NCBI RefSeq assembly: GCF_964204645.1
Contig: NC_134036.1
Coordinates: 2,790,001-2,854,000 of the forward strand
DNA length: 64,000 nt
Origin: Tubulanus polymorphus
Lineage: Eukaryota; Animalia; Nemertea
Reading direction: 5' to 3'
Shown: positions 1 to 32,800 of the stretch, in pieces
Numbering within the stretch: position 1 is the stretch's first letter
Layout: every line of letters starts with the position of its first letter
Notes under the pieces: generated by a model
What the model was told of the DNA's origin: nothing
Databases searched by the model: none
What the model saw: the letters and a program-made list of their open reading frames with translations, nothing else
Made by a program: the position numbers and the translations under genes

Positions 1-2215
1 GTGGCAACTATGAGCTCTCTGTCCATCGGATTCTATCTTCAGGACAGGTGTCCAATGGAGCAGCTCAAAGGGGCAGCTCTATCTATCTATCTGATCCTAC
101 TGCTGTGCAGAGGAGACCACGGGTGTAGCCATGAGATTCCTATCAGACTCAGAATCATGTAGGATGGAATGAATGAATGAGAGCATCCACAAGCTCCCTG
201 TTTAATGGATACAGTCTGCTTTGGTTCCAGCTAGTTGGCAAAGACAACAGAAGGCTTTCATGGTTTGAGTATTTGCAAACATTTCCCAAAACAGGAAAAT
301 GCAGATACTGACCGCATCTTTGTCGGGCTTTTTTAAATTCCGTTCAGCTACAGAAATTAATGAATGCAAGAGGAGTTTATTTAGAAGGCCGACTATTCCC
401 TGATTCGACTTTTGTAGAAGGCTGGATACCATGGCAACGAGAGGATATACAGACAGACTGAGCGATGGAGCGATGAGAAAACGCCCAAAGACTTCGATGA
501 AGATTATCACATATATCAATATCAACGCAAATATGAATTCATGAATATTAGAGACGAAATAAGTGATATTATCAAGATCAGACATGAGATTGAGAACCTT
601 CCTTATCATTAATGACCAAAGTGCCAGCATTGAAATAAATATCAACATGTGATTGAACTTGAAATTATGTCTATATAAATATTGCCTGTAGAATTCACTA
701 GGGTAAGATTCAATTAGTCCCAGGTGATATCATGTCGTTGTGCTGACATAAATACAATATGCCAACGATAGGAAATCCAATACATATCTAATACAATTAC
801 GTTAACTTTATTTTGTAAAGGACAGATACATATCAAGATATGTTGCTACTTACATGCTCATAATACCTGAAGTTATATCTCTTCGAAAATAAAAGTATTC
901 AAATTTACCTCATCTGAAGAAACATGTAGCATTTCTGAGTTCTCAACAACAAGACGAAGCCAGACAAAATAAACTCGATTCAATCAGCAAAACCTAGAAC
1001 TACTTTTGTTCTATCCTCTTCAGGTTCCTGGTGTGAATTAGCTACCCCTACTATTGTAACTATACCGGTAACTGTCTTTTTCAATAAGAAAAAAAATAAT
1101 AACATTGTTTGCATTGATATTGTGGGTTTCTCTTAAGGATATGCCTACAACAAGTGTCAAAATATGCTAAACCATGGAAGGAAACAAACTATATAATCTA
1201 GTTTATATGTCCATGACCAAACCAATCATTTCCAAGTCAATCATGCTCTTACAAGTTAAGTAACGACATTGCATGTCAATAGCGCCATGCGAGATCAGTA
1301 GTGGTTAATTAATAAACCATGTCCTACCGAATTAAGCATTGTTATGTTATACGCTCAGCTGGTCGACAATTACTTCTTGGGAACCCCGCCAGACTTTCAG
1401 TTTCATAATAGAAAGTCAGACCACTCATATCAAACTACTAATATATACATGACCCTGCCTAATAACACTAACAATCAGAATAGAATTTCACAATGCGTAA
1501 TAGGGCCCTCCACCCTGAGTAGTTGGTGGCTTCTGTGGTTCCTATGACTGCCGTGTGGCCTATTGACGTATTGTTAAAAAGACAATTTGTTGATTCCTCA
1601 CAGCTATGGAAACTTGTATTTTGTGTAGGCCTATGTCAACTCTTTTTAATACGGCATATAGCATTCATCAGCTTTTGATATCAAAGAATTCCTATTTCAT
1701 TAGCCAGCTAGATGTTTTTTTCAGGCAAAATATAATATAACTCAGCCTCTTATTCAATGCGGATGTCCTTTTTCTAACTTGATAACCACTTGATTGGATA
1801 CAGTTCCCAAGACAATATCACCTAGCGGCAACCTATGTTGAAGTAGGCCAACCATATGGTACAAGAATGGATGTTCCAACATCAAGTCTGCATCAAATAC
1901 CAGTACCGGTACCTGACAGAAAGGTACCAAATATTGGGGCACGGCCTGACTTTTAGATGCCACCAATGCTTAGCGTGAGATTTGACTTCAATGTTTTTTC
2001 CGAATAATTTCAAAAGCATAGAAAAGCAGAGAAGTAAGTAGGCCTACCTTTATATTATGTACAGTAAAAACTGTGTTTATGAAAATATGAAATTACAAAA
2101 ATCTGTGATTGTATATACACCTAGATTTCAGCTTGTTTTATAGTTATGTAGTGAGAATGCAATACTTGTTGTCTCACTACAGCAAACCACTGAACCAGGT
2201 ATATGCACCATATAA

Positions 2216-2526
2216 GACTAAAAAATGATAGCTTGTTTCTCCTAATCGGCAGGGGGTCATTTTATGAACTGATGTAAAATTTGTGATCAGTTCATTTCTA
2301 TAACTGTCGAGTCTGTTATTGTTAGCTTGATCATGATTTTTGAAAAAGTAATATACAGGGTAGATAGGCGGCCGACCGGTCAAATTTTAAGCTCAGCAGA
2401 AATGAGCGAAACAAGGTACCTATCTGTACGAGTGAGCACTTACAAGAACTTCTACCTGAATGCTAAATGCGAGCCTATTGTGACTGTTCTACTTGCTGAG
2501 AAACAAGGTATCAATTTGTTTTAGCC
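2216..2526. mobile_element. MITE family A (TIR GGCTAAAAAATGATACCTTGTTTCTC-like, TAA TSD)
   Basis: taa|gactaaaaaatgatagcttgtttctc ... gagaaacaaggtatcaatttgttttagcc|taa. Internal sequence is shared with 21765-22272 and 28051-28270. Confidence 0.7.
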
Positions 2527-2904
2527 TAAAGCTTTTCATATGCAGGAAAAGTTCAGTTTTTTGAAGATCAAAAGCTGTCAACATAAGCTCCACTACTTCC
2601 CAGCAACTTTTATTTTCAGCCAATAGCTGTCAACATAAGTTCCACTTCTTCGCAGCAAATTAGTACAGCATGAATGTCAAAATGTTATCACAGAATGAGG
2701 ACAAAACAAGTCTACATTTATAAGTTTCACTTTTACTCTTGGGTAACCCTTATGTCAAAATGCTTTGTAAAGTACTTCGTTGCAGTGCTATTTATATACA
2801 AGAATTAGGCCAACACATGTGTTTCAGGCTCAGACAAATACTATAACGCACATACAGATAGATAGGAGTTGTTAGAAGAAAGTTCTTATTCGGAACACGA
2901 AAAT

Positions 2905-3186
2905 ATGGTCTCCACGAAACATTGCTGTTACGGTATTTGTAACAGCGACTCCAGGTACGATTACCGACCGCACATGCAAGGAGTTAGATTCATACCATTC
3001 CCGAAACCGAAAAGGTATCCGGCTAAATGTGAAAGATGGTTAAAGGCTTGCGGACGTCCCAAAGAGGATTTCAACGCGAACAAAGTCACGAGGAACACCT
3101 ATATTTGTTCGAAACATTTCGTTGGACAAAACGGGCCCACGGAGGAAAATCCGGATCCAATACCCGCTACAGCATGTCGCGAACAA
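2905..3186 (+). CDS. THAP-domain protein, coding exon 1 (C2CH THAP zinc finger)
   Basis: MVSTKHCCYGICNSDSRY...FIPFPKPK...CERWLKACGR...YICSKHF...P shows the THAP signature (C-x4-C, FP, W, C-x2-HF, P). The exon ends CAA|gtatgt at 3186, phase 0. Confidence 0.9.
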
Positions 3187-3501
3187 GTATGTAGAAATTC
3201 TTTCATTTTCAAACGAATCTAATACCGGTATTATTCAAGTATACAGCTATTTTACGATACAGCTGACACAGTAGATCAAAATGATAGGTCCGACTTTTAG
3301 ACAATATATCTCTTATTTGTTTATAAAGATAATTTGTAGTTATCCAAGTTCTGACAAAAGTTTATATTCAGTGTTTTTCTGTAGAATTTTAGAGGAGCTG
3401 CATTGATTGTATTACATTATGGCTGCTGAACTAGCAAGGCTTTCAATTCCCCCCCCCCAAAATACTGAAACTTCAGCTTAATTTGTGTGTAATCTTCTAT
3501 T

Positions 3502-3751
3502 TCTGGTAGGGGCAGCAGATATTTCATAAGGGGTGGCTGATTTTCAGAGAGTTGAACTGTAAAAATGAAAGGGGTGGCCGTCCCTCTAAAACCTGAACTA
3601 ATCTTTTCTTTATCTCTTGATAAAAGATTTCGGTACAAAACAATTATCAGCACTGATAGAATATTGACATGTACTCTGGTAGGGGCAGCAGATTTTCATA
3701 AGGGGTGGCTGATTTCCAGAGGGGTGGATGTAAAAATGAAAGGGGTGGCCG
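3502..3751. repeat. direct duplication (~80 bp core, ~173 bp spacing) in THAP intron
   Basis: tctggtaggggcagcagat...aaggggtggctgattt...gtaaaaatgaaaggggtggccg occurs at ~3502 and ~3675. Confidence 0.75.
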
Positions 3752-3857
3752 CGCTTCAAAAACATGTTGTGGAGAACAATACTTTGATATTCTAAGTAGA
3801 AAAAATCAGCCGTATTAAATTTTGGCAAAGTAATAATCTATCTTGTTTTACTTGAAG

Positions 3858-4304
3858 GTCGAAGCATTTAATTGTCGCAAACGAAAGGCACCAACAGCGC
3901 GAAAATCAGTTAACAATAAAAAACGTTTGGACGCGGCTGAAACTTTAGTGAATTTAGCTGATTATTTCCCGAATAATCACAGCACTATTCGTGAACTGCC
4001 GTCTACGTCTGGTTTCGAAGCTGATCGAAAATTAGACAGTAAGTCATTTTTTAAGGATGCGGAGACTCAAACTGAAACTCAGTGCAAATGCCGCGTTGGA
4101 ATCTGCTACAGCGACACATCTTGTCAGACCGCAATTTCATACCCTCCGGTTCATGACGAACTTTCTTTGCAAGTCAAAATCGAACCGTTGGATTCGTGCG
4201 ACGAAATAAACGCATCGGCAGATTGGGAAGAACCGGACAATACGTTGTCGTTGTCGTGGGATACGTTCGTAAAACTTGAGGACGTAAAAAACGAGGTTGA
4301 ATGA
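3858..4304 (+). CDS. THAP-domain protein, coding exon 2 (basic NLS-like stretch, TQT motifs, stop); joined protein ~242 aa
   Basis: Acceptor tcttgttttacttgaag|GTC at 3858 is phase 0 and in frame with ORF 3843..4304. Encodes RKRKAPTARK, DAETQTETQ and DTSCQT; TGA at 4302-4304. Confidence 0.75.
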   Translation, partial: VEAFNCRKRKAPTARKSVNNKKRLDAAETLVNLADYFPNNHSTIRELPSTSGFEADRKLDSKSFFKDAETQTETQCKCRVGICYSDTSCQTAISYPPVHDELSLQVKIEPLDSCDEINASADWEEPDNTLSLSWDTFVKLEDVKNEVE

Positions 4305-6579
4305 TATTCTGGTAGCGGACATAAATTTTCAAACCTCAAGTGGACATTTTCAAACCTGTCTAAAGATAATGACTGTCTCTAATAAAACTCTCTTCGGCCA
4401 AGAGTCAATCTACTCTCTTCATCAATCTACTTATTTGTTATACATTTTATTTGTAATTATGATTGATGATGAAATAAATTACATTATATTACAAAGATAA
4501 TACAGTAAATCTTGCCTTAAATATTCATGTCAGGACTTTTGATGAACATGGACAAAAACGATATCATTGTTCTGATTTCCTTACATATTTTTCCTATCCT
4601 AAACTCAGATGTCACTCAGACCAATTTTTCTGGTCTAAGTGTTGTGACTTAGGCGAGGTTAACTGTACTACATATAAGTAGTAGAAATAAATAGATTACG
4701 CATTTAGAACACAATTTAACTGTAGACCTAGGTATAGTTAGTTAGTTAGTCAGTTAGTTGACCTATTGTTAACACCCGAGTCAGATCAGTTAATTCAAAT
4801 ATCATACCAATGACTTTTCCCAGGGCCTACAGTAGTTAGACTTATCTAAACTATTTGTTTACTTTATCTTTTTTTAAATCTCAATGCTGGTCTTTTGGCT
4901 TCCTGGTGAATGATTTTTCTTCATTAAATAGTTTTGGAACAGAGGTTCTGGTGTCTTTAATGCAAAATTCAAGGTGAACTCGGTCAATGTGGTACTGCAT
5001 GCTTAATAATCAGCAGATTGCAGATTATTTTTGAATAATATTCTAATATCTTTTTTTTGGAAAAATAAAAATATCGTACGCAGTACTACTGAAATACGCA
5101 ATGACACTATAGCTAACTTACCTATATTCTACAGGTGCGAAGTCACATACACTTCAGGGGAAAAAACTTCCGAAAATAAATCTTCAATACTATATACACG
5201 CTAAATAATAATCCTGAAATCTCCTTCGGTTTTGGACGGAAACATGAAATGATAATCCCATAAGTAACTAATCCATTTTAAATATAAATCCCTGCGATGT
5301 GAGCAAGAAATAAACTTTTTTGCTATATATCCTATGCGAGTAGTGTTTTGTATTATAGCGATAACAATGTAGACTGAACTAGCATTGCCTTTACCAGGTG
5401 GAATAGGCCATTCATTCAATAGCGTTCTGAAGGGGTGGCAGAATAACTCTACACTTTATATACTATAAATATAGATTTAATATAAATATATTCGTTATTC
5501 GGCGAAAGTAGAAACGTAGCTGGGAAAAAGTTCACGTTTTCGATCGTATGCGTTTCTGCAAGTGTCTATTGACGAAAAAGAAATTTGTCGAGACATAAAT
5601 TCAAAATTCCCGAAACAAGAATTCTTTTATTGCTTTCGTTGTAAATAGAAATATTTAGCGTTCTTTTCATAGAAAGAATGTGGAAACAATTGCGTAACAA
5701 TCCATTCCTGAACTGGCGCTAAAAATATCTCTTAGTTCATAAGTTTGCTTGACAAACAGGAAGGACTAAGTTAGACAAATTAAATATCTGTCAATTATAG
5801 ATGAAATCCAATGAAAGAGAAATTTATTGAAACAAAAAACCACAAAGTTTTGGCTGTTGACTAACAGCCATCATCAGGGCGATTGACCAAAAACAGAATG
5901 TTGATTGAAGTATCTAAACTCATAGTATATTACATAAGCAGTGACTATGGTTCAGAAACTGATATGAAATGTGGTTTCATTTTGAGAAATCTTTTCTCAA
6001 TCATTTAATCCCAGTGTGTGACTTCTCTATACAACTGATAACTTATGATTTTTCAAAATATTTCACTCGATCTTCTTATCTACCTATAACTTGTGGATCG
6101 ACTAGGTTTAAAGACCAGTTTTAAACTTCAATCATAACTCACATGGATGTGAATGAATCAATTTGCAGGGTGTAAATTTTGCAATAAAACAAGTCTGGAA
6201 AAAAGATCCTCTTCCCGGAAAGTTGTAAGACAAAATAGATCTCCATGTGGCAAATCAGTAAATGAAGCCTTTCAAACAAGTGGGTTTAAAGATTGGTTTG
6301 GAAAATAAATTTGCAGGGGGAATCCTGGTCTTTGGAAAAGAAAACAGGTCTGAAACAAATGGGTCCTCTTCGAAGAAGGTTAAGAGAGAGAGAATACAGA
6401 TCCTTGTGGCAAATCAGAAAATAGAGATCCCTGCAAGAGGCACTAAAGTAAAATGCAAGGACGAATTCATCCGATTTTCAAGGAAAACATGGATGAGTGG
6501 AGCAGAAAAATTTCTAGGCCTAAAATGTTACAATACATCCATTTTTTCATTGACTCAAGTATTGATTAAGTAACATTCT

Positions 6580-6770
6580 TGAGTTTTCCAGGTTTTTTTT
6601 GGTAAAATTTGTCAAATTCCCAGAGTTTTCCCTGATTTTATCTAGATTTTTCAGATTCCGTGAGTTTTCCAGGTTTTTTTTGGTAAAATTTGTCAAATTC
6701 CCAGAGTTTTCCCTGATTTTATCTAGATTTTTCAGATTCCCTGAGTTTTCCAGGTCAGTGGCGCCACCCT
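6580..6770. repeat. ~81-bp tandem duplication of a dispersed repeat end (related sequence at ~30300-30385)
   Basis: tgagttttccaggttttttttggtaaaatttgtcaaattcccagagttttccctgattttatctagatttttcagattcc twice. Confidence 0.75.
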
Positions 6771-6820
6771 AGTGAATGGAGGCTATTCTATCGAATGAAA
6801 AACTTATTAACATTCTTTAC

Positions 6821-9800
6821 CTTCTTAGGATCCGTTTCTTCGTAAAGTTTATCAGCCTTATCCAACAATCGGCGATCGACTGCGTAACCTTTGGCGACAC
6901 CGCTGCTTTCGTCCTCTTCGGGAATTCCCTCCGGGAATGTCGTCCTCGACGACGGGTCGACGTCTCCGTCGTCGAACGAGTCGACCTGGATACTGATCTG
7001 ACCGGCGGACGTGAAAAATATCTCGCGTTTACTTTTAACGTCGGTCGGCGCGTGTCGACTCATATCGCCCCCGGCGTCGAGCGTCGGTTTCGATTGTTGG
7101 ACGCGATCGCGTTTTTTCGTAAGACGATGAACAGTCCAGCCGTCGACATTCTCGACGACGATCTCACGTTTACGCGCGGCGGCCGCTCTCCGAGCCGAAC
7201 GCTCCGATTTACTCTCCGGTTTAAAACCGAACTTTCTCGTCGTCGTCGACGATTTCTCGATGCTGTGACGTTTACGATGCGGTTTCGGCGGCGTCGGATG
7301 AACCTCCTCCGCGCGACCTTGAGGATCGTCGGTCTGTTCGGATTCCTCGATTTGACGCAGACGACGTTCCCGTCTCGCCGCTTTACGTAGTTTACGCTCG
7401 TGTTTGTATAACTCACTCCGCGATATTTCACCCTCCGTCGATTTCCTGCGTTCTTCTTCCGATTCGTTTTTCGACTTTTGTTGTAAAATGTTGCGATCGA
7501 CGAGGGCTCCGCGGATACGACTAACGATCGACCAGTTGTTGCCCGTCGCTGACGAGTTTCTATCTTTATCGCTTGTATCTACGACGACAGCTGTTGTAGC
7601 CGTTGCTAGGAGATGATCGTCTTCTCGGGAACATCTGTCGCCATCGATTGCGTCAACAATGTTTCTGTTTATTTTATTATCGATCGTGAATCTATCGCCT
7701 CCTCGGTCAGTTGTCGGCGAGGAGGACGACATATTCCCGCAGCCGTTGTTACCAGGCGACAAATTCATCGCATGATTGTTGATCGCTCGTAACCGTAGCA
7801 ACTCGGCACTGCCGTTTTCCCCGTCATCGTAGACGGACTCGACGTCGGCGTCGTAGCTAAATCGAACGTTCAAATGTCGATCGGACGGAAATTCCAAGAT
7901 GTCCGAACATCGGGAGCTCGATCGACTGGTTTTCTGGTCGACAACGTAGAGACTGTCCTCGTCGATTCGCTGCGGCATGACGGGTAAACTCGGCGAGTCA
8001 AGGCTACTCGTACCGGTGCTGCCCCCGTGAGATGACAACGATCGTAATCGCGATAGAAACGATGCCTCGCGTAATTCGGGCTTCGAATCCGAACGTTTAT
8101 CGTAATCGGGACTTTTCACGCTCATTGCTGCCGTAGCCGTGGTAACGCCGCTGTGCTTACCGCCACTTTTCAATTTCGAAAAGAACGAAACTTCGCGATC
8201 GTTGTTCTCGGAATCGCCGATGTTATCGTCGTAGTGAAACACACTCGACGCCACCGAGTCCGTGCTGTCCATTTTTTTGATACTCGCGATTCGCGAAAAG
8301 AACCACGGACTGCGTTCATTGTTACCATTGTTGCTATTGACGATACGATCGGCCTTACAGTTCGCGTCGAGACTTTCTCCGATTTTTCCACCTTCGCACG
8401 ATTTAAAAACGGCCGTCGGTGAATTTACGATATCGTCGGCCGTCGATATTTTCTTTGCGTTGGCTCTCTCGTCGTCGGGGTCGACAGCCGACTTTTTACA
8501 CATAAACCGCGAAAATACGGACGACTTCCCTGTCTCTTCCGGTTCGTCATTCGCATTTGTCGTCGATAGCAACGATGAGTACTCTTGCGCCGCGTCCGAC
8601 TCGTTCGGAGTCATCGTCGTGGATGCGAGTTCTTGCGACGACGTGCCGTTGCGTTTCAAACCGAATCCGGTGATTCGCGAAAATAGCGACGGTTTCTCGG
8701 TGACGTATTCCTCCTCGCTGTCGAACGAATAATCGCTACGATCCTCGGTGCTGCGCCCTGTTATCAGCGAGAAGAACGACAGTTTACCATCGCTCGATTT
8801 CACCGGAGGTGAACGCGATTTCGGCGATTTAATGGGCGCCTCATTGTTGTCGGATGATTTATTCGCGAGGAATCGCGATAAGAACGACGACCCTTCCGGT
8901 TGCGATTTGGGCGATATTTTTTCTACGTTTGTCGTCTGCTCGAGACCGATCGACTCGGTGCAGTCCGCGGACGTCTTCTCCGTCAAACTCTTTCCGATTA
9001 TGCGACCGAAAAATGAAGAATCAGTTTTCGGGCTCGAGGAAGCATCTTCGTCATCTTCCGCTTCGGGACAATCAAGTTCGTTGGTTACCTTAACGACATC
9101 TTCATTAACGCGCTTCGTACTCTGCTCGCTAGATGGCACTTTTGCGTATTGATTCAACTTTTCCGCTTTTGCGCGTAGATTAAAGAAGAACAACGATTTT
9201 GATTTCGGAGAATCGTCTTCACCGACGGTGGCGCCATCTTCTTCCTCTTCGACTTCGTCCATTTCCGTCGATTCGTCGACTTCCCGCGCGGCGATCGAAT
9301 CGCGGAATCCGGTGAACATCGATTCGAATCCTTTAACGAATCGATTTCCGATGCTGACTCCGCTCGATTTAACGATCGGCGTCCCGGGAACGCGATACTG
9401 AGCCGGATCGAAGTCCGAATGAACGCGTCCGTGCGATACGACGTCCGAACTGGAGACGCCGATTTCCTCGGTCTCGTCTGCGAACGTCACCGATCCTCGT
9501 TTGCGTGTGTCATCGATGCTGATCCTCAACGCGCTTTTCGCGCACGTCTCCTTCCGCGACGGATCTGACGATTTACGACTCGCGCGATCGTCGAAACTCT
9601 TCCCGCTCATCTGACGTCGTTTATCGATCTCTTTTTTCAACTCGCTGCCGCCCTTACTCGACGAGCCGTCCGAATTCCTGCGTCCAACGACGTCATCAGG
9701 CTGCGAACCGCGACGCTTCCCGGGGATCAGAGCGCCATCTAGCAGCAACTCGTGTAATTCCGATTGACTTAGTCGACGTATACCGCCGCCGCCGTTGATG

Positions 9801-12800
9801 TCGCCGCCATCTTTGGAATTTCGTCTCGGTTCATCTTGCGAATCGTGTGACGCTCTCAGCTGCTCCTGTCGAATATCGATGCTGTCTTTACTCGATCGTC
9901 TTAATCGATCTTTGCGGGTTCTTTTCATCGGTTCTTTCTTCATCTCTGTCGCCCGTACGCTCTTCCGACCCGCGCCGCCCGTTTTTTCCGTTTCTCGACG
10001 TGTTTTCTCCGACTGAACGCGAACGAGCTTCCGTCCGATGTTCAGTTCATCGTCGTCGTCACCGCAACAATCATCCTCGATGATTCCCGATTCGCGTCGC
10101 ATCTGTTTAAAACTAGTGCTCTCGACGATCTCTAAACTGGCGCTGGTTGCAAACGACCGGTCCGGCGATGAAACAATGTCCATGTTACCGTGCAACGGGT
10201 CACACGACGATAGATAATCGGTTTCGAGTGTCGTCGATGGCAAATCTAAACTCAACGAACTGGCTCGACTAATCTCGATCAACGCGTTGCGCCAATTCTC
10301 GCCTTTCTCGGCCAATGATCCGATATCGTAACCCTGCGTCACTAAATTCGGTACGAAATCAACGAGACTTTGTTCGATGAATTCTCGCGCGTAAATCGCA
10401 GCCTGTTCGTCGCACGTCTCCTCGTATTCGTCGCGTGTTTCCACGATTATCGAATCGACGATATCATTGATAATCTCGATTTGATACGTTTGATGCGCCT
10501 GTTGGATGATCTCGTTGACGAAGTCGTACGCGCACGTCGTCAACAGGCGGTCGCTAACGACCACGGGCGATGAAGTCTCCATCTCGCCGCTCTGTGATCG
10601 AAGGCGTTGGAATTCGTCCAAACTCGATTCGACCGACGTTTGTTCCGTGCAATTTTGATTGAGAATGTTGACGCTTTCTTGCAAAACGTCGTCGACGAAC
10701 TGCATAGCAATCGCCTCCTCAGACGCGGCCGCCTGCCGATTGGTCGATTCGCAACAATCGTAAATATTCACCGATTGATCGCCGCGACGACGACAAACCT
10801 CCGCTATCACCGTCGTAGATGACAACGCGTCGTTAACGGTATTGTTGGCGATTTCGCTGGTTCGTTCTTTCAAAACGTCGACGGCGTCTTCGATGAGTTT
10901 ATTGACGAAAAACGCCGAGAAATTAAAAATCTGTTCGTCGTCCGTGAGACTGTCGTCAAAATAATACGTATCGTCAAAAACGTGGACCTCGCGAAGACGA
11001 CACGACGATAACGTCGCCCCTGACGACGATGATGCGTATTGTTGCTGTAAGTCGGCGAGATCGACGAGCGAACACGTGTTACTGCCGATCGACGACAGAT
11101 CCTCGTCGCTGATGTCGCAATCGGACGCCGTGACGACTGAAGCTTGTTGCTGATCGCGTATGAATCGTACCCGCGACGCTGGCAGCGCCGCCTGCTGGTT
11201 CGAATCATGAACTATATCTCTAGCGATATCATGCGCGACGTAATTCCCATCACCTAACATCATCAGTTTATACGTTGTTGTCGCCGCGGCGTCCATTGTT
11301 GGCGGTTTTACATAATACTTCTTACGGCAAATACTGACAGCTTGGTCGATGATGTCATCGATGTAACTTTGAACGGTTGTTAGGAATTCCGGATCTTCGT
11401 TGTCGGCGGCGATTTGAGAATAACGGTATACGCGTGGTCGATGGCGTTGCCTATTCGGTGGTGGTGGTGGCGCCGCTGTACATGTCGTCGCGTTCAGCTT
11501 CGAATGGCGTTTCAAACACGATGGACATTTCCGGCGTTGTCGACGTCGTTGTTGCTCGGTAACTGTCATCTCGGCGATGTTCGCTAGGTTACGTTTATCG
11601 GGAATTCTCTCATCTCTTCGAACGTCGTGCGTTAATTTCTCCCAATTTTCAGTCGTTCTATCGCTACGTCGACGCTCGTCTGCATTGCCATCGGTTACTC
11701 GCTCGACTACAGTTGCTATGGTTCTACCGACTAAATGAGCCCGGGATGATGCTGTCCCTCGTTGCTCTGTGTCGACGTGCTTTGCTAGAATGCACCACAA
11801 TCGAGTCATATCCTGTTTTCCGAACTCGGCCGTCTCCGGATCCACGTCCTTGAGATCATCCGTTCCTTCGTGAACGACTTCTTCGTTTACTTCTCGCGCC
11901 ACCTGGTGACCGATTACTTCACCAGTAGAGCATTCCTCGGCGAGGTGCTTCCCCAGTTTACCCCAGCGCGTTCCGATTTGCTCCGGTTGCGTTTCGGCTC
12001 GTTGTTTTCCCGTGAAACTCTCGACGATTTCTAAACTCGATTCACGACGAATTTTGTCGATGATTTTGTCAGTGTCGATCGGTCGATTCTTCTTGGTGTC
12101 GTCGGATAGATGTTCCCCGAGTGTTGCCCAGCGCGGAGTCGCGTATTTCGACGGGCCTTTTTCGAAACTTTGCCCGGCGAATTCTCGTATGATCTTTATT
12201 GTCGTCTTCGATTTAGTCTTCTGCGCCGGTTCATCATCTTCGACGGTGTTGGACTGCGAAACGCCCTTCGAAAGCCGATCCCAATCTTCGTCGTAATCTC
12301 GACCGCTGCACGACTTCAATTTCTGCTCGTCATCTGCAGCGAGGTCATTTCCAAAAATATCTGTAACCACAGCGAAATTTGGACACGACTCCGAGCGCTC
12401 TTTGACGTCGAGTTCCTCGTCGTAGCTGGCGCTTCGTTCGGGAACGAGGAGGCGTCCGAGGTGATCCCATCGGTCTCGCGTACGGATATTCGGAATTTCT
12501 AACGGATTCGCACGCGGACGCTCGCTCTGCGCGAATATCTGATCACCACCAGGTGGCGTTCCCATCACCCCGCAATTCGATAGATCGTTCCACGAACTTG
12601 CTAAACCCGTTGATGATATGTTGATATTCAACGAGTCCATCTTCGATACTTCTGGTTCTGGTTGCATCGCTTTCTTGATGCACAGTTGTAATTTCAAAGC
12701 ATCGGCATCGATGGCGCCATCTATTGAATCCTGGCGTAGTTTACGTATGACTTCTTCTGGGTCAAAGTTCGGCCCATCGCGTTCATTCGTCAGGTTATTC

Positions 12801-14359
12801 AAACTGTTCTGCGGAGTCATGGGTTCGCAGTCTGTGTCACACAGAATACCGAGGTGGAGTTTCTTCTGGCGCACCTCCTCAAGTAGATATGCATTTTTGA
12901 TGCACGGTAGCTCCCCCTGCGACGCGTGAAGTTGCGTCGGATCCGCAAAACTCGTCTGAGGCGTCAACGTACGGTGACATTCGTCTTTTTCATTGTCGTC
13001 CTGGACGACTTCGGCGCTTCGTCGCAGAGCTTTCGACAACGCGGAGGAGCGCTCTTTACGTCGCATATCGAACGTGTCTTTCAACGAGCGTTCCCACGAA
13101 TTTTTCAAAATTCCCATCGGTTTCCGGTCCGGCGCAACGGTGGCGCTAGTAGCATCGGCGGCTTTGTTGTCATCGTCGGTGTTGTCGATCGGAAACGCGG
13201 CGAATTTCGATTCGGATTTCAAACAATGCGGCGAGTTGCAATAATCGTCTTCTTCTTCGAGAACATCGCTGAGATATTTCTGCAGAATCTTTCGCTTCTG
13301 TTCGACGTTGATCAGTTGATCGATGTTCGTCAGTTCGGGCATGCCGTGTTGCTGCATGAAATACTCGAATTTCTTATCGACGAGACTCGCGCTTTCGACC
13401 ATCGTATTATCGAACGCCGCGAACAAATCGACGCCGTCCGGACCGGCGACCCATTCGCGCAACTCGCGTAATTCAGAGATTTTCTGATTCCGTTCTTTCG
13501 CTTGTTCTTTCATTTCGTGGTCGCTGAGCATGCTCCCAGTTCGGAGAAACTTTGCCGATTTCGCCGCGCGATCGTCGTCGGGGCCGACGCCCCCGAGACG
13601 CATTCCTCCCAATTCGTCGAAACCCGTCCAACTCTTCCGTCGATGATCGTTCACCTTCTCGTCTTCATCTTCGTCTTCCTCGGCGATGCTGCGATACGGC
13701 GGCGTGTATAAATTCCCCGAGCCGATACTCGACCAATCGTAATGCTCTTTCATCGCACGTCGCTTTGCGCGGATTTTCTCCATGATCTCTGCGTTCCAGA
13801 AACTCGGCAGGCTGTTCTCGCGCGCGTAACGATCGAAATCCGTCTCCGGCGGAATATGCGGCGCTCCGCTTAACGATGTATTGTTCTTGTTGAACTCGGG
13901 ACAAAGCGGCGCGTCCGGCGTCGAAGTCGACGTCTTCGACGAGTCGTCCGATTCGGATTTAACGTCCGCTTCGTTGGAGTCGCCGAAGTTACCGAAATCA
14001 CGATCGATACTAAACTGCGAGCGGATACCCCATTGTAACGGTTTCGCGGCCGCGGCGGCCATCGGTAAACTAAACGCGTTGTAATTATCGCTATCGTCCT
14101 CGGTGAGCGGATCCGGCGTTACCGGGTAACCGCGCTGTTCTAGATCGCTCAATTCCTGATCGTCGCTGTCCGACGAAAGCGATTTCGCCGGTAATCCCGC
14201 GTTCAACATCATGTTCAACGAACGTCGTAACGTTCTATAGAGTTTATGCGAAGTGATGTCCTCGTTGCCGAGAATGAAGGTCGATAGTTTCGAGCCGTAT
14301 TTATGAAGCGGGATCAAGTCTAAACTCGGCACGGTGAACGCTTGCAGAGCGATTGTTAT
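6821..14359 (-). CDS. PRUNE2: prune giant alternative exon 8B (PRUNE2-like): DHHA2 C-terminal segment plus ~2460 aa disordered scaffold; may instead read through to the stop at 6788
   Basis: 7.5 kb open frame with acceptor tatatttttag|ATA ACA ATC at 14359, phase 0. The first ~48 aa (ITIALQAFTVPSLDLIPLHKYGSKLSTFILGNEDITSHKLYRTLRRSL) align with the short prune last exon. Candidate donor AAG|gtaaag at 6821; in-frame TAG at 6788-6790. Confidence 0.8.
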
Positions 14360-15132
14360 CTAAAAATATATAGAATTATCGTAGACTTAAGTTTCAGCCC
14401 TTAAAGTTGCTGAAAAAAGGTTAAAGATAACCGGCGGATAAATACCAGAGTAACAATAAAACTTTTAAATGTCAACTATCCATTGGTTAACTCTAACCAA
14501 CTTTTGAGCACTTTCGACCCCAGACTTCTAATTTGATCGGAGCCTACGTTAAATTGTTAAATCGATAAAATTTTTTCAAATGTAACTGAATTGAATTCAA
14601 CTGGCGAAAAGGTATTAATGTTGGAGGATCAAGGAAATAAGAAAAAAGAAATCAGTGTAGATCTATACACTTGAGCAAATATGACGAAGATTGAATTGAA
14701 AATCATGGTTTGGTCACATTTATCCATTCATTCATACCAGATGAATTTGGAGAAAAAAAACACCGACAGTGTCAACAACATCTACATGCATTTATGAAAA
14801 AAAAAAACGAAAATGACACTGAAAGCTACTGAAATGTGTAGGACAACATACCTCGGGTCCAGGAGTTTGAGTTATATTCAAAAGCACCATTATCATAGGT
14901 CTGAAGTTTTTCTACTGTTTTTACAGTTTACGGTAATGAATGAGATTCAGATGAAGTGATGTTCCATTCAAAAGATATTTGAGACATATTCGAGAACTAA
15001 AATCTATAGTGAAGTTAGGCTATTTTTTCGCGAGTTAAGCGTATCCAAAAATTTTACGTTGACACAAAATCTAACACAATGACACAAAAAATCGTTTATC
15101 TACAAAATTTTGACTTTCAAGTTTTATTTCGA

Positions 15133-15291
15133 TCACGTAGAAATGACAGTTTTCACGATCGGCAATATGGCTTTACGCGACGCGGCGATATTGCCTTGAC
15201 GATAGGCTATAAAGTCGGCTGACGGTACCGACCGAATCGGAGTGAGATCCAAAACAGGACCGGGAGTGTCGACGCGGAGTGCTCGGTCGAT
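15133..15291 (-). CDS. PRUNE1: prune short terminal exon 8A (PRUNE1-like; completes 368 aa isoform)
   Basis: Acceptor cgcttgcag|ATC, phase 0. IDRALRVDTPGPVLDLTPIRSVPSADFIAYRQGNIAASRKAILPIVKTVIST* matches the prune C-terminal QGN...SRK..LP motif. Confidence 0.9.
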   Translation of the reverse strand: MDRALRVDTPGPVLDLTPIRSVPSADFIAYRQGNIAASRKAILPIVKTVIST

Positions 15292-15907: not shown

Positions 15908-16066
15908 CTTATCGCGGAGGCTTGGGTTTGTGGAGTATATAGCTAACTGACGTTCAATGCAATCATCAGTAGAGGGAGCCACTGTCAAGATGACGGCAGC
16001 GTCGGCTTTTTGTAGCGCGAGGAACTTCAACAAATCGGAATCGATTTTCGAACGATGGAGAAACGT
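15908..16066 (-). CDS. PRUNE1: prune coding exon 7 (DHHA2 domain)
   Basis: tttcag|ACG ... GATAAG|gtaggt, 159 nt, phase 0-0. Encodes TFLHRSKIDSDLLKFLALQKADAAVILTV...IERQLAIYS. Confidence 0.9.
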
Positions 16067-19965: not shown

Positions 19966-20026
19966 GGAGAGCAGGTAAGTCAAGGCATCAATAGTCTGAT
20001 AGATCTATCTCTCATCCGAATCTTAC

Positions 20027-20310
20027 CCTTCCATTTCGCACTGTTCTTTCGGCCGATGATCGATGACCTCGACGACGCAATCGGCGAATTCTTCGTCCGT
20101 CGACGACAATACGTGATGGTCGACCAACGACAATCGTAACCGCGATGATGCGTATAATGCGGCGAGATCGATCTCATCGCGGAATGTTAGATTATCGGAG
20201 CCGACCAGTTTGAACTTGTTCAGTAAATAGACGATCTCCGTGCGCAGGTTGAAATCGGCTTTCGGTATTCCGAGCACCGGAACGATCAACGTGAATTCAT
20301 CGGATTTTAT
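20027..20310 (-). CDS. PRUNE1: prune coding exon 3 (DHH catalytic motif)
   Basis: aattttag|ATA ... GAA GG|gtaaga, 284 nt, phase 0-2. Encodes VPVLGIPKADFNLRTE...FRDEIDL...LSLVDHHVL...VVEVIDHRP. Confidence 0.93.
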
Positions 20311-29331: not shown

Positions 29332-29898
29332 CTAGTGGTCCGGGCGCGTCGGGGCGCCGGTCAAATTCTCGCGCAGTAAATGCATTTCGTTCAACGCTTG
29401 AGTCAAAAACGGTCGCACCGTGTTCAACTCCATCAACGTCAAAAAGTTCAACTTGGCGTTCGTCGAGTCGCTTTTCACGAATAAATCGACGCTACTGCGT
29501 AATTTCGACATTCGTAAATCCCAGATATCCTTAACGAGCGTACGCACGTCGTCCGCTCGCGGAATATCGTCGGCGGCAACGTTCAACAATAACTGCGACA
29601 CCTCGACGTAGAATTCGTCGGGCATTTCGGTGAAAAGTTCCGAATCGATCTCCGCCTGTTTCGTCGCTTCTAACGCTTCGACGTTCATCCACGCAGGTGG
29701 CGTTATCCGACATTTTTGGCGCCGTTTCAAATTGACGGCTAGCCACAATGGCACGTCGTCGACGGCGACAGCTGCCGAAAACGGACCGACGTCGCCGCCG
29801 ATCATGTAAAGTTTAGCGAGCGTAAAATTCGGCACGATCGTCACGGCGCGTTTCTCGGCGAAGAATTCGACGTCGGCCGGATCCATATAGTCGTACAT
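29332..29898 (-). CDS. GINS2: DNA replication complex GINS subunit PSF2, intronless CDS nested in prune intron (alternative ATG at 29886)
   Basis: MDPADVEFFAEKRAVTIVPNF...GPF...VPLWLAVNLKRRQKCRITPPAWM...IPRADDVRTLVKDIWDLRMSKLRSS...LTLMELNTVRPFLTQAL is full-length PSF2. Acceptor gtatcgttttag|GCG at 29940. Confidence 0.95.
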   Translation of the reverse strand: MYDYMDPADVEFFAEKRAVTIVPNFTLAKLYMIGGDVGPFSAAVAVDDVPLWLAVNLKRRQKCRITPPAWMNVEALEATKQAEIDSELFTEMPDEFYVEVSQLLLNVAADDIPRADDVRTLVKDIWDLRMSKLRSSVDLFVKSDSTNAKLNFLTLMELNTVRPFLTQALNEMHLLRENLTGAPTRPDH

Positions 29899-32800
29899 TG
29901 TTGTCGTCACCGTGGCCGCGGCGCCCGTCGATAGACCCGCCTAAAACGATACAAACAGAAAAACGACGGATGGTAGAGTGAATGAAACAAAAAAAATACA
30001 ATGTGGTGGAGGTGTGTGGTGCTAGTTGGGGATAGGGTAGGAATGGAGCTGAAGGTACGGCTGTGTTATACTAAAGTTGTGCGGTACGATCTCTAGAGCT
30101 CTGGAGTCGTTCAAGCTATTTAAGTTTACGCGATTTGGACTTCGGGAAGGGAACCTCAGTAGGGTGGCCACTTTCCGCCTGTTCGAATATCCTCCTGAGT
30201 GAATCAGAGAAATTCCTTGATCTTAAATGTTACAATTCATTCATTTCTTACTGAATTATGCACTAATAAAGAACTACATGGTCAATAACATCATTCAATT
30301 CCCCGAGTTTTCCAAGTTCTTGGTAAAATTTGTCAAATTCCCTGAGATTTCGCCCTGATTTTTGTCTAGATTTTTCTGATTCCCATAGTTAACCTGATTT
30401 CTAAGTTAAGTGGCTTTCCTACTAAGGCATTGATACAAGTTGAACGGTGAGGGCAATTACCAGAGCATGCTTGAAACATAAATGAAGTGTGAATGGGTTT
30501 AAGGTCGACGACCCTGAAGCAGTGGATTTTAGTTTGTACGTGGTAGTGATGTTTAAAAGAAGTCAGTAAGGGTTTGAGAAGGGCATGCATGCGAACAAAT
30601 ACTCCATGAAAACTAGCTGCCGAGTCTTTATCAATTTGTAATTTCATTCACGTTTCAGTTCTTGTTACCAATTCCGAAACTAAAACGTTTGTGAAGCACT
30701 TTACCAGATATTCCTATCTTTCGTTATTTTGGATTTTAAGAGTGTTCAGTGTATCATGCTCTCTACTTCTTAAAGTGCAAGGCAATTTCGCAACAACGGC
30801 AAGCACATTATCATGACATTCAATGCAGACATTAATCAAAAGGTCCGATTTAAGTGAAATATTGCCAATCTTAATCTAGCTATAAATAATTTTCCAATTC
30901 ACCAGTTCATCCCTGTCTTATTATTAAACTGTTTTCATCTGTTTTACCAATTACAAATTAAACACCTACTGCACGACTGGGGGTGTTTTTTTTACAAGTT
31001 TTACGAAACAACATCAAGATGAAATGAGATGATAGAAAGAAGACTAGTTCGACTAGTTCAATGGATGGGTTAAGAAGTTTTCGTCAACTTATCCAACAAG
31101 ATTCATGGGAGCCATTGCACAACAAACATTGAAAATTCAAAAAATTAAGTCTGGACAATAAAAATTCTCTCAAATTCCAATGTTTTATCTGGGTTTCTGC
31201 CATTCACAGTGACTGGATTTATACTTTCAAGTTCATAACATTTTCCAAGGCATGCTCTTTAACTATCATTAACGTTAGTTTATCAAGATTCGATGGATCT
31301 TCTTCATCTTTTCTATATCGAACATATCCCATCAATGTCAAATTTCTCTCTCCTATCGCTCAAGATGAAGATTCTATTTAAGTAAGTGATAAATTTTCCA
31401 CATGACGAGACGTTGAACGTTTAAATCGGTATCTGAAAAGTCGATCGTATGCTTTAGAGTATTTCTGTACATTACAGAGACATCAAACAAGATACTAAAA
31501 CTGCCTGAAGATACAGATTGAGGTGATACAGGTGGAACTTCTTCTTCACGAACTAAATAACAACAACAACGACGGAAAACACATGCAATGATGGAATACG
31601 CTCACAGCGAAGAGATTAAAGCTTTGAACTGTTGTTGGAACATCTTCTCTTTAAGCGGGAAGGATGGTTTACGATGTTACAGAAAGGAAATGATGGAGAC
31701 TGATAGCAGAGGGATGGGCAAACCTAGTTTCAGAAAGTAAAGGATGTGGAGACAGGAGAGTCGAGCAAAAATTCTTTACTGATGTTGTTGATGAGTGAAA
31801 CAAAAGGATGAACAATGATGAACTTCTTTGACGAACACAAAACCTGGGAATGGGCAAATAAACGTTCCCAATGTTGGCTAAAGCTATTTGAAGTGAAGTG
31901 GAGATGAGTAATGACAGAGAAGATGATGATGTAGACAAAAAGAACAGGGAAGGGATGGGAGGCAGGTTGTCTCCTCACATTAGGCAGAATGTTTGTAATA
32001 ACAGCCATACTGTACCCAGCAATGTCCGGTATTGCCGTCAACACTACGATTTAAGACACTATTTTAAACCGGTCATCGTTTTAGAGAATATTCTACTTAC
32101 AATCAGCCTTAAGATCATTAATGGACTTAATACACGACTAATTAACTGAGCCCTTGGAGTTTAAGTACATTGTTCCCTCAGATGCACGAATTCAAACTTG
32201 CCAAATCAAAAAGTACTGCAAGGGCGATTTTCAAATAGGGCCTTCGTAAAAGTGAGCACACCATCATGTCACATTTAGGTGGCACCTGGTTGATAACGGT
32301 GATCTTTCCATACATTTCTCGGATAAGCAAATTTCCAGATATATCATTTTCAAATTTCCTGATATCCCAGTACTATGAGAACCATGTTAGTTAGCGCACC
32401 AAGGGTTGAAGAAGGTATCAGTGCAGAGCCTAATGGTCGCTGGTTGGTGAAGATGATTTTCAAGAAAAACTACTGAAGAAAGTTGCCCTTGGGCAAGCAA
32501 TTGATGTATCAAAACTATGCTATGTGAAGTGTACAGTGAAATTCCCGTATATTTCTTGGATTAGAGGAAAATCTATAAAATTCCCAAATTTTTCCAAAAG
32601 GGAAAATGTTATTCCCAGGTTCTTCCAGATTTCCCAGTGCTGTAGAAACCACGCAAGTTGTCAACCAAGGGTTGAGGTAGGTATCAGTGCACAGTATGAA
32701 ACCACAGACACTGGAACAGGGTTTGTAACAGCACTGTGGGTTCGTAATGATTCAAATCTATCATTACCTGCTCGATGAGATATTTCAGTAACTCGAGTAA

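Follow-up and report, generated by a model that had tools for sequence, protein, structure and literature searches.

The window analysed here is a stretch of 64,000 nucleotides from the nemertean Tubulanus polymorphus (NC_134036.1, positions 2,790,001 to 2,854,000). It carries a gene of the prune/PRUNE2 type with a giant alternative exon, and this exon encodes an array of eight predicted amphipathic helices (H1 to H8) in the register of A-kinase anchoring proteins (AKAPs). The array is a plausible multivalent anchor for protein kinase A (PKA) or for other proteins with D/D (docking and dimerization) domains. Judged from the sequence, this is the single best-supported mechanism, and we give it a probability of roughly 0.38. 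Positions are those of the window, where all genes, exons and motifs described lie on the minus strand; amino acids (aa) are numbered along the long open reading frame of the giant exon.

The prune locus and its giant exon

A single very long open frame was present on the minus strand of the window (6788-14332, 2514 codons). The giant alternative exon was placed at 6821..14359, and the open frame continues past it to a stop at 6788-6790. Its G + C content was 0.51-0.52, compared with ~0.38 in the flanks. The exon directly follows an acceptor (tttttag, 14360/14359) and is read in phase 0. Close to its end, ahead of the stop, we recognized a donor-like site (AAG/GTAAAG, 6821/6820).

Upstream of the giant exon lies a short alternative terminal exon 8 (15133..15291), which would give a PRUNE1-like end. 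It has a cag acceptor, phase 0 and a TGA stop, and is followed by an AATAAA signal at 15123-15128. Read side by side, this short exon and the opening ~50 codons of the giant one are paralogues, with I..AL....LDL.P...GN...K in common. Next comes the constitutive prune exon 7 (15908..16012, 5' end approximate), ending in AAG/GTAGGT in phase 0. An open stretch with a prune DHH-motif exon (…LVDHHVL…) was found at 20026..20310 and matched the yeast exopolyphosphatase PPX1 (2qb6, E 7.4e-6). Upstream exons on the same strand were readable as a prune/DHH phosphoesterase, with legible DHH motifs. Pfam DHHA2 had no match in six frames or in the single prune exons; exon by exon this is expected, because the pieces are short. 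A CRAL_TRIO_2/BCH domain was matched with 43.6 bits at G000:C12:2786199-2786594 (minus strand), 3.4 kb past the start of the window and in the orientation of the prune gene. The prune exons were searched one by one, and position and the donor-like site tentatively link the giant exon to the BCH domain.

The DHH head, the giant exon and the downstream BCH domain support a PRUNE2/BMCC1 layout, with a PRUNE1-like short end added in the same locus. The earlier note on this DNA had placed the array in a giant prune exon, and this setting held: a PPX1 match lies upstream, and the giant exon opens after an acceptor with the paralogue of the short exon. It had also proposed splice-switchable short and long isoforms. 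From the duplicated exon 8, the BCH match and the PPX1 match, the locus looks like this: through the duplicated exon, the short PRUNE1-like product and the long PRUNE2-like one would both come from one gene.

In the intron that separates the two versions of exon 8, a segment (14437-14633) had a word depth of 600-15000 in DNA runs, versus 20-50 around it. Many loose ends were found at 14469-14512 within this segment, which is a highly repeated short element.

Eight helices in an A-kinase anchoring register

The eight peptides quoted by the earlier note as an AKAP-like array are real: all were located in the translation of the one minus-strand frame 6788-14332, at aa 987-1325 (nucleotides 10358-11374). 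Aligned in an 18-residue register, the eight helices span aa 986-1331 (nucleotides 10340-11377). In every one of them, most of positions 2, 5, 6, 9, 10, 13, 14 and 17 are occupied by small or hydrophobic residues. With this hydrophobic register, AKAP helices make contact with the D/D domain (PMC12083921), and the published aliphatic consensus is LxxxAxxIVxxAIxxA (PMC3682517).

Three measures of similarity were used. The first was a provisional 12-residue AKAP-type regular expression. We ran it alongside a strict core taken from the consensus of PMC3682517. The third was an in-register BLOSUM62 score against six peptides validated as D/D binders, which served as the reference set (PMC4526808, Table 1; for Ht31 see also PMC2169452).

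H1 (11324..11377, aa 986-1003, TVQSYIDDIIDQAVSICR) is predicted helical and carries the strict core IDDIIDQAV. H2 (11186..11239, aa 1032-1049, VAHDIARDIVHDSNQQAA), preceded by a Tyr, matched the regular expression and scored 23 to AKB-RII; its IARDIV..QQA resembles LAKQIV..QQA of AKAP-is. Two matches to the regular expression and the strict core VNKLIEDAV were found in H3 (10868..10921, aa 1138-1155, FSAFFVNKLIEDAVDVLK). It is contiguous with H4 (10811..10864, aa 1157-1174, RTSEIANNTVNDALSSTT), the weakest of the eight against the eight-helix profile. H5 (10658..10723, aa 1204-1225, SEEAIAMQFVDDVLQESVNILN) can start its register at 1204 or 1208, holds the strict core VDDVLQESV, and was the top window of the whole frame against the validated peptides, with a score of 31 to AKAP-is. 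The best of the eight against the profile was H6 (10481..10534, aa 1267-1284, CAYDFVNEIIQQAHQTYQ), contiguous with H7 (10421..10474, aa 1287-1304, IINDIVDSIIVETRDEYE), which scored 24 to RIAD. H8 (10340..10393, aa 1314-1331, YAREFIEQSLVDFVPNLV) has Tyr-Ala at positions 1-2, and a Pro at position 15 ends the helix. An FA or YA start is a determinant of RI-type, that is RI-selective, docking helices (PMC12083921).

The core [AVIL]xx[IVL][IVL]xx[AS][IVL] was present in H1, H3 and H5 and nearly so in H2, H4 and H6, while H7 and H8 deviate. Docking helices are amphipathic stretches of 14-18 residues with a hydrophobic register and no internal proline, a description that the eight fit apart from the Pro at position 15 of H8. 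Overall, the eight predicted helices, of 18-22 residues each, share the A-kinase anchoring register, a small or beta-branched aliphatic face and an acidic polar face. A possible extra helix, outside the earlier list, lies upstream (11861..11914, aa 807-824, IGHQVAREVNEEVVHEGT). It had a high register score and was the second-best window of the frame against the validated peptides (score 25).

At the DNA level, short repeat families join the helix cores, D1 in H1, H3 and H6, and D3 in H5 and H3. These links hint at internal duplication.

Clustering beyond chance

The regular expression had five matches in the whole frame, all of them inside a 356-aa region that makes up 14% of its length. In residue shuffles of this region the mean was 0.79 matches, and at least five were reached in 24 of 5000. 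The strict core matched three times, again only inside the region, a count equalled in 5 of 5000 shuffles. With the BLOSUM62 score, 13 windows of the frame reached at least 18, of which 7 lay inside the region; one shuffle in 1000 reached 7. The fit to the AKAP/D-D docking pattern, proposed from inspection of the peptides, is therefore borne out by all three measures and now has numbers attached. A compositional artefact was rejected, since shuffles seldom matched the observed counts.

The hydrophobic moments of the helices (0.20-0.55) overlapped those of the validated peptides (0.36-0.53), with a somewhat wider range. Their net charges were -1 to -5, versus -1 to -3 in the validated peptides, and their polar faces are acidic. 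Membrane binding by the helices was rejected because of these acidic faces. A generic hydrophobic moment did not mark out the region (6 of 26 windows). As read from the residues, the enrichment is one of AKAP-type residue choice rather than of amphipathicity as such.

Coding constraint

Among the 33 variants listed in the giant exon, 25 were synonymous and 8 non-synonymous. With a site ratio of ~1:3.5, this corresponds to a ratio of non-synonymous to synonymous polymorphism per site (pN/pS) of ~0.09, and the giant exon is clearly under purifying selection. Of the listed variants, ten fell in the array region, 6 of them synonymous and 4 non-synonymous, and the latter four were all in linkers. 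This placement is consistent with constraint on the helices, although the numbers are too small for significance.

The sequencing runs that cover the stretch are DNA, because their contigs cross introns at even depth, and so they say nothing on expression or splicing.

Candidate D/D-domain partners and PKA-type target sites

D/D-domain partners are encoded in the same genome. Five RIIa (PF02197) loci were found above cut-off: an RII-type D/D exon (L001), an RI-type D/D exon, an apparently intronless RII-like subunit (L005) and two R2D2-type domains. RI, RII (two loci) and two R2D2-type partners are therefore present. L005 (G000:C5:5067370-5070462) is a 374-aa uninterrupted open frame whose product resembles an RII regulatory subunit of PKA: it combines a D/D domain with the inhibitor site RRHSV and two domains for cNMP binding. 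Introns seem to be lacking from this frame, in contrast to the RII-type exon of L001.

The frame of the giant exon contained 11 RRx[S/T] sites versus 2.6 expected, and none of 2000 shuffles reached this number. Seven of these basophilic-kinase (PKA-type) consensus sites form a cluster at 9671..10099 (aa 1412-1554, 143 aa), ~80 aa after H8.

A possible multivalent anchor and its rivals

The segment aa 986-1331 is a real, translated-looking, acidic and helix-rich module of a long isoform of the PRUNE2/BMCC1 type, and it is lineage-specific or fast-evolving. As an anchor, it would work as follows. At least some of the helices, if exposed, would dock in the groove of dimeric D/D (RIIa-fold) domains, of PKA RI, PKA RII or the R2D2 type. 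The long isoform, where expressed, could then gather one or several PKA holoenzymes on one scaffold. This scaffold would also bear the DHH phosphoesterase head and the BCH tail. The anchored kinase might phosphorylate the RRxS/T cluster just downstream of the array, and the choice between short and giant exon 8 would switch the scaffold off or on. The most elaborate version, an invertebrate PRUNE2 orthologue that is an up-to-eight-valent anchor for PKA and/or R2D2-type D/D domains, with its own substrate cluster and switched by the giant exon, is rather unlikely to be right.

A resemblance to known AKAPs came from a language model. In the ESM Atlas feature search, the named clusters closest to the array were those of AKAP4 (0.82; AKAP_110 + RII_binding_1) and AKAP11 (0.79), scores that lie below 0.9, with low "recognition", and count as a lead only by the calibration of the tool. 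The ten best named matches of the array stretch all belonged to one family or clan, and a control of equal length from the same exon (aa 1400-1780) gave no usable match. The resemblance of the array to the AKAP_110 family is thus sub-threshold, seen by the language model only, and no more than a lead.

The low ESM Atlas scores are among several results that weigh against an anchor. The Pfam check suggested by the earlier note was negative: with E values up to 10 allowed, neither the whole frame nor pieces of it matched RII_binding_1 (PF10522), AKAP_110 (PF05716) or any AKAP family, and only sub-threshold noise appeared. For RII_binding_1 this is a weak test, because the very short model has little power. 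AKAP_110 was also absent in a profile search of the genome, a search that matched no control genome either. A profile of the eight helices retrieved no AKAP chains from PDB, and a PDB sequence search with the array region gave no AKAP match; an NCBIfam scan gave noise only. Word-index searches with the array region, the whole exon or aa 175-375 found no homologue, nor did an exhaustive phmmer search with the array region in 1.84 billion representatives. These blanks are weak evidence of absence, because nemerteans are poorly represented in the libraries. Within its own genome, the array region found only itself and no paralogue, and the eight-helix profile only the eight training helices. Among the reads, one possible RNA run had nothing on the stretch, the constitutive exon included. 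With its 6 synonymous and 4 non-synonymous variants, the array region is no more constrained than the remaining exon. Generic amphipathic helices of folded proteins satisfy the same register.

The closest competitor starts from this last point. The helices could belong to a self-contained folded helical domain, or to several, private to this lineage, with their faces packed against each other and no D/D docking, so that the AKAP look would be generic. H3-H4 could form a hairpin or one long helix, and H6-H7-H8 a three-helix bundle. Such a private folded domain is nearly as likely as an AKAP-type anchor. H3/H4 and H6/H7/H8 are contiguous, the gap between H7 and H8 being only 9 residues. The array region has a rather "ordered" composition, with an excess of V, I, Y and C and a shortage of K, G and P, and its linkers also hold hydrophobic stretches and a predicted beta-hairpin. 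Contiguity, composition and hydrophobic linkers are as would be expected of a folded domain with buried hydrophobic faces, and the lack of an AKAP match in Pfam and a hydrophobic moment that does not pick out the region would suit it too.

AlphaFold2, run on the single sequence, placed helices at all eight sites with low confidence, and for aa 1258-1338 it drew three helices with short turns, as a bundle would have. The predicted local distance difference test score (pLDDT) was 37 over the 381-aa region and 51 over aa 1258-1338, with a predicted template modeling score (pTM) of 0.26-0.34. These values are low for either reading, and no confident fold emerged for a domain. H1, H2 and H5 are set apart by linkers of 28-88 residues, which does not suit a compact bundle. 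The faces are rich in Ile, Val, Ala and Ser, as in AKAP helices, and similar to the validated peptides beyond composition-matched shuffles; the ESM Atlas led to AKAP4 and AKAP11 and not to a bundle family. A helix of a bundle can also still serve as an AKAP site, as talin shows (PMC10990152).

A further explanation leaves PKA out. The helices may dock another partner of acidic amphipathic helices, or drive self-association of the scaffold, with the RRxS sites serving other basophilic kinases. The acidic polar faces (net charge -1 to -5) and the lack of a family assignment in the Pfam, NCBIfam and PDB searches would suit this. PKG also uses RRxS, and other AGC and CaMK kinases use related basic motifs. 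No positive evidence was obtained for any specific other partner, and it is the D/D binders that the helices resemble most in register and in their choice of residues. We regard this explanation as rather improbable. Finally, the array could be a product of chance or composition, in a part of the giant exon that evolves fast and has no function. This would be in line with the missing homologues, but is very improbable given the rarity of the observed counts in composition-preserving shuffles, the purifying selection on the exon and the residual DNA-level similarity of the helix cores (D1, D3).

For an anchor of PKA, the earlier note had gone further and proposed a "cAMP signalosome", a multivalent anchor fused to a phosphoesterase. 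The anchoring side of this model gained from the docking-pattern helices, the language-model lead, the two-ended locus, the D/D partners in the genome and, as new support, the RRx[S/T] cluster downstream of the array. Its enzymatic side fared worse. A cAMP phosphodiesterase activity of PRUNE1 was reportedly described by D'Angelo et al. in 2004. Later work detected no such activity of PRUNE1 and confirmed a short-chain exopolyphosphatase activity (PMC7788287; see also PMC3022644). The cAMP-phosphodiesterase basis of the model is thus disputed and is its weak element, and this counts against an anchor of this kind.

Comparison with known systems

The AKAP_110 group (AKAP220/AKAP11, SKIP/SPHKAP, AKAP3 and AKAP4) comprises large scaffolds with more than one amphipathic helix that docks R subunits. 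AKAP220 and SKIP sequester several PKA holoenzymes (PMC12083921). The nemertean exon is likewise large and has several candidate helices; the group supplied its nearest named clusters in the language-model search, and its H8 has the YA start of RI-selective helices. It differs in that neither PF05716 nor PF10522 matches it and sequence homology is not detectable, in its eight candidate helices versus two, and in its host, a prune-type phosphoesterase with a BCH tail. The AKAPs of this group arose at or after the vertebrate base (PMC12083921), whereas the nemertean gene is an invertebrate one.

With the validated peptides Ht31, AKAP-is, SuperAKAP-is, RIAD and AKB-RI/RII, the helices have in common the register, an aliphatic pair at positions 9/10, the acidic polar face and a small residue at position 13 (in H2 and H4 also at 6). 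With AKAP-is, H2 shares ..IA+.IV....QQA, and H5 gave its score of 31 to this peptide. Several of the nemertean candidate helices have, unlike these peptides, Phe or Tyr at 5 and Asn, His or Arg at 14, and H8 has its Pro at 15.

To our knowledge, hardly any function has been assigned to the giant middle exon of PRUNE2/BMCC1. In the 340-kDa vertebrate protein, a large middle region separates the prune-like N-terminal part from a BCH domain at the C terminus (PMC4669766, PMC3765211). The nemertean locus likewise has a DHH-type head, one giant exon and a same-strand BCH/CRAL_TRIO_2 match downstream. Its giant exon differs in showing no detectable similarity to any library protein, and the one locus seems to supply both a PRUNE1-like and a PRUNE2-like end. 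No AKAP role for PRUNE2 was reported in the literature found. AKAP-phosphodiesterase signalosomes such as mAKAP-PDE4D3 resemble the model of the earlier note in that PKA is anchored beside a signal-degrading enzyme. In the nemertean model this enzyme would be fused and not recruited, and the cAMP activity of prune is disputed.

Surveys put nearly all AKAPs, and all multi-helix AKAPs, in vertebrates (PMC12083921). If the array is an anchor, multi-helix AKAPs would predate the vertebrate expansion, and multivalent anchoring would extend to invertebrates. The AKAP class would gain a candidate member in a new host protein, of unusual valency, from an invertebrate. An anchor would also suggest that the PRUNE2/BMCC1 giant exon was at its root a kinase-anchoring scaffold, giving this exon a testable function, and would show that one gene can make either a small enzyme or, by a splice switch, a large signalling scaffold. 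If the helices instead form a private folded domain, this would be an ordinary lineage-specific domain.

Other features

A second possible array was found elsewhere in the giant exon, at 8040-9196 (aa 1713-2097). It consists of nine short S-[FL]-[FL]-S-[RK]-[IFL]-like motifs (SLFFFNL, SSFFGRI, SSFLSRF, LSFFSLI, SLFSRI, SVFSRF, WFFSRI, SFFSKL and SFLSRL), 35-70 residues apart in Ser-rich surroundings. They look like short basic amphipathic or lipid-packing-sensor-like motifs. The large first intron of prune contains, in the same orientation, a single open frame for a PSF2/GINS2-like protein (MDPADVEFFAEKRAVTIVPNF…) at 29335-29940.

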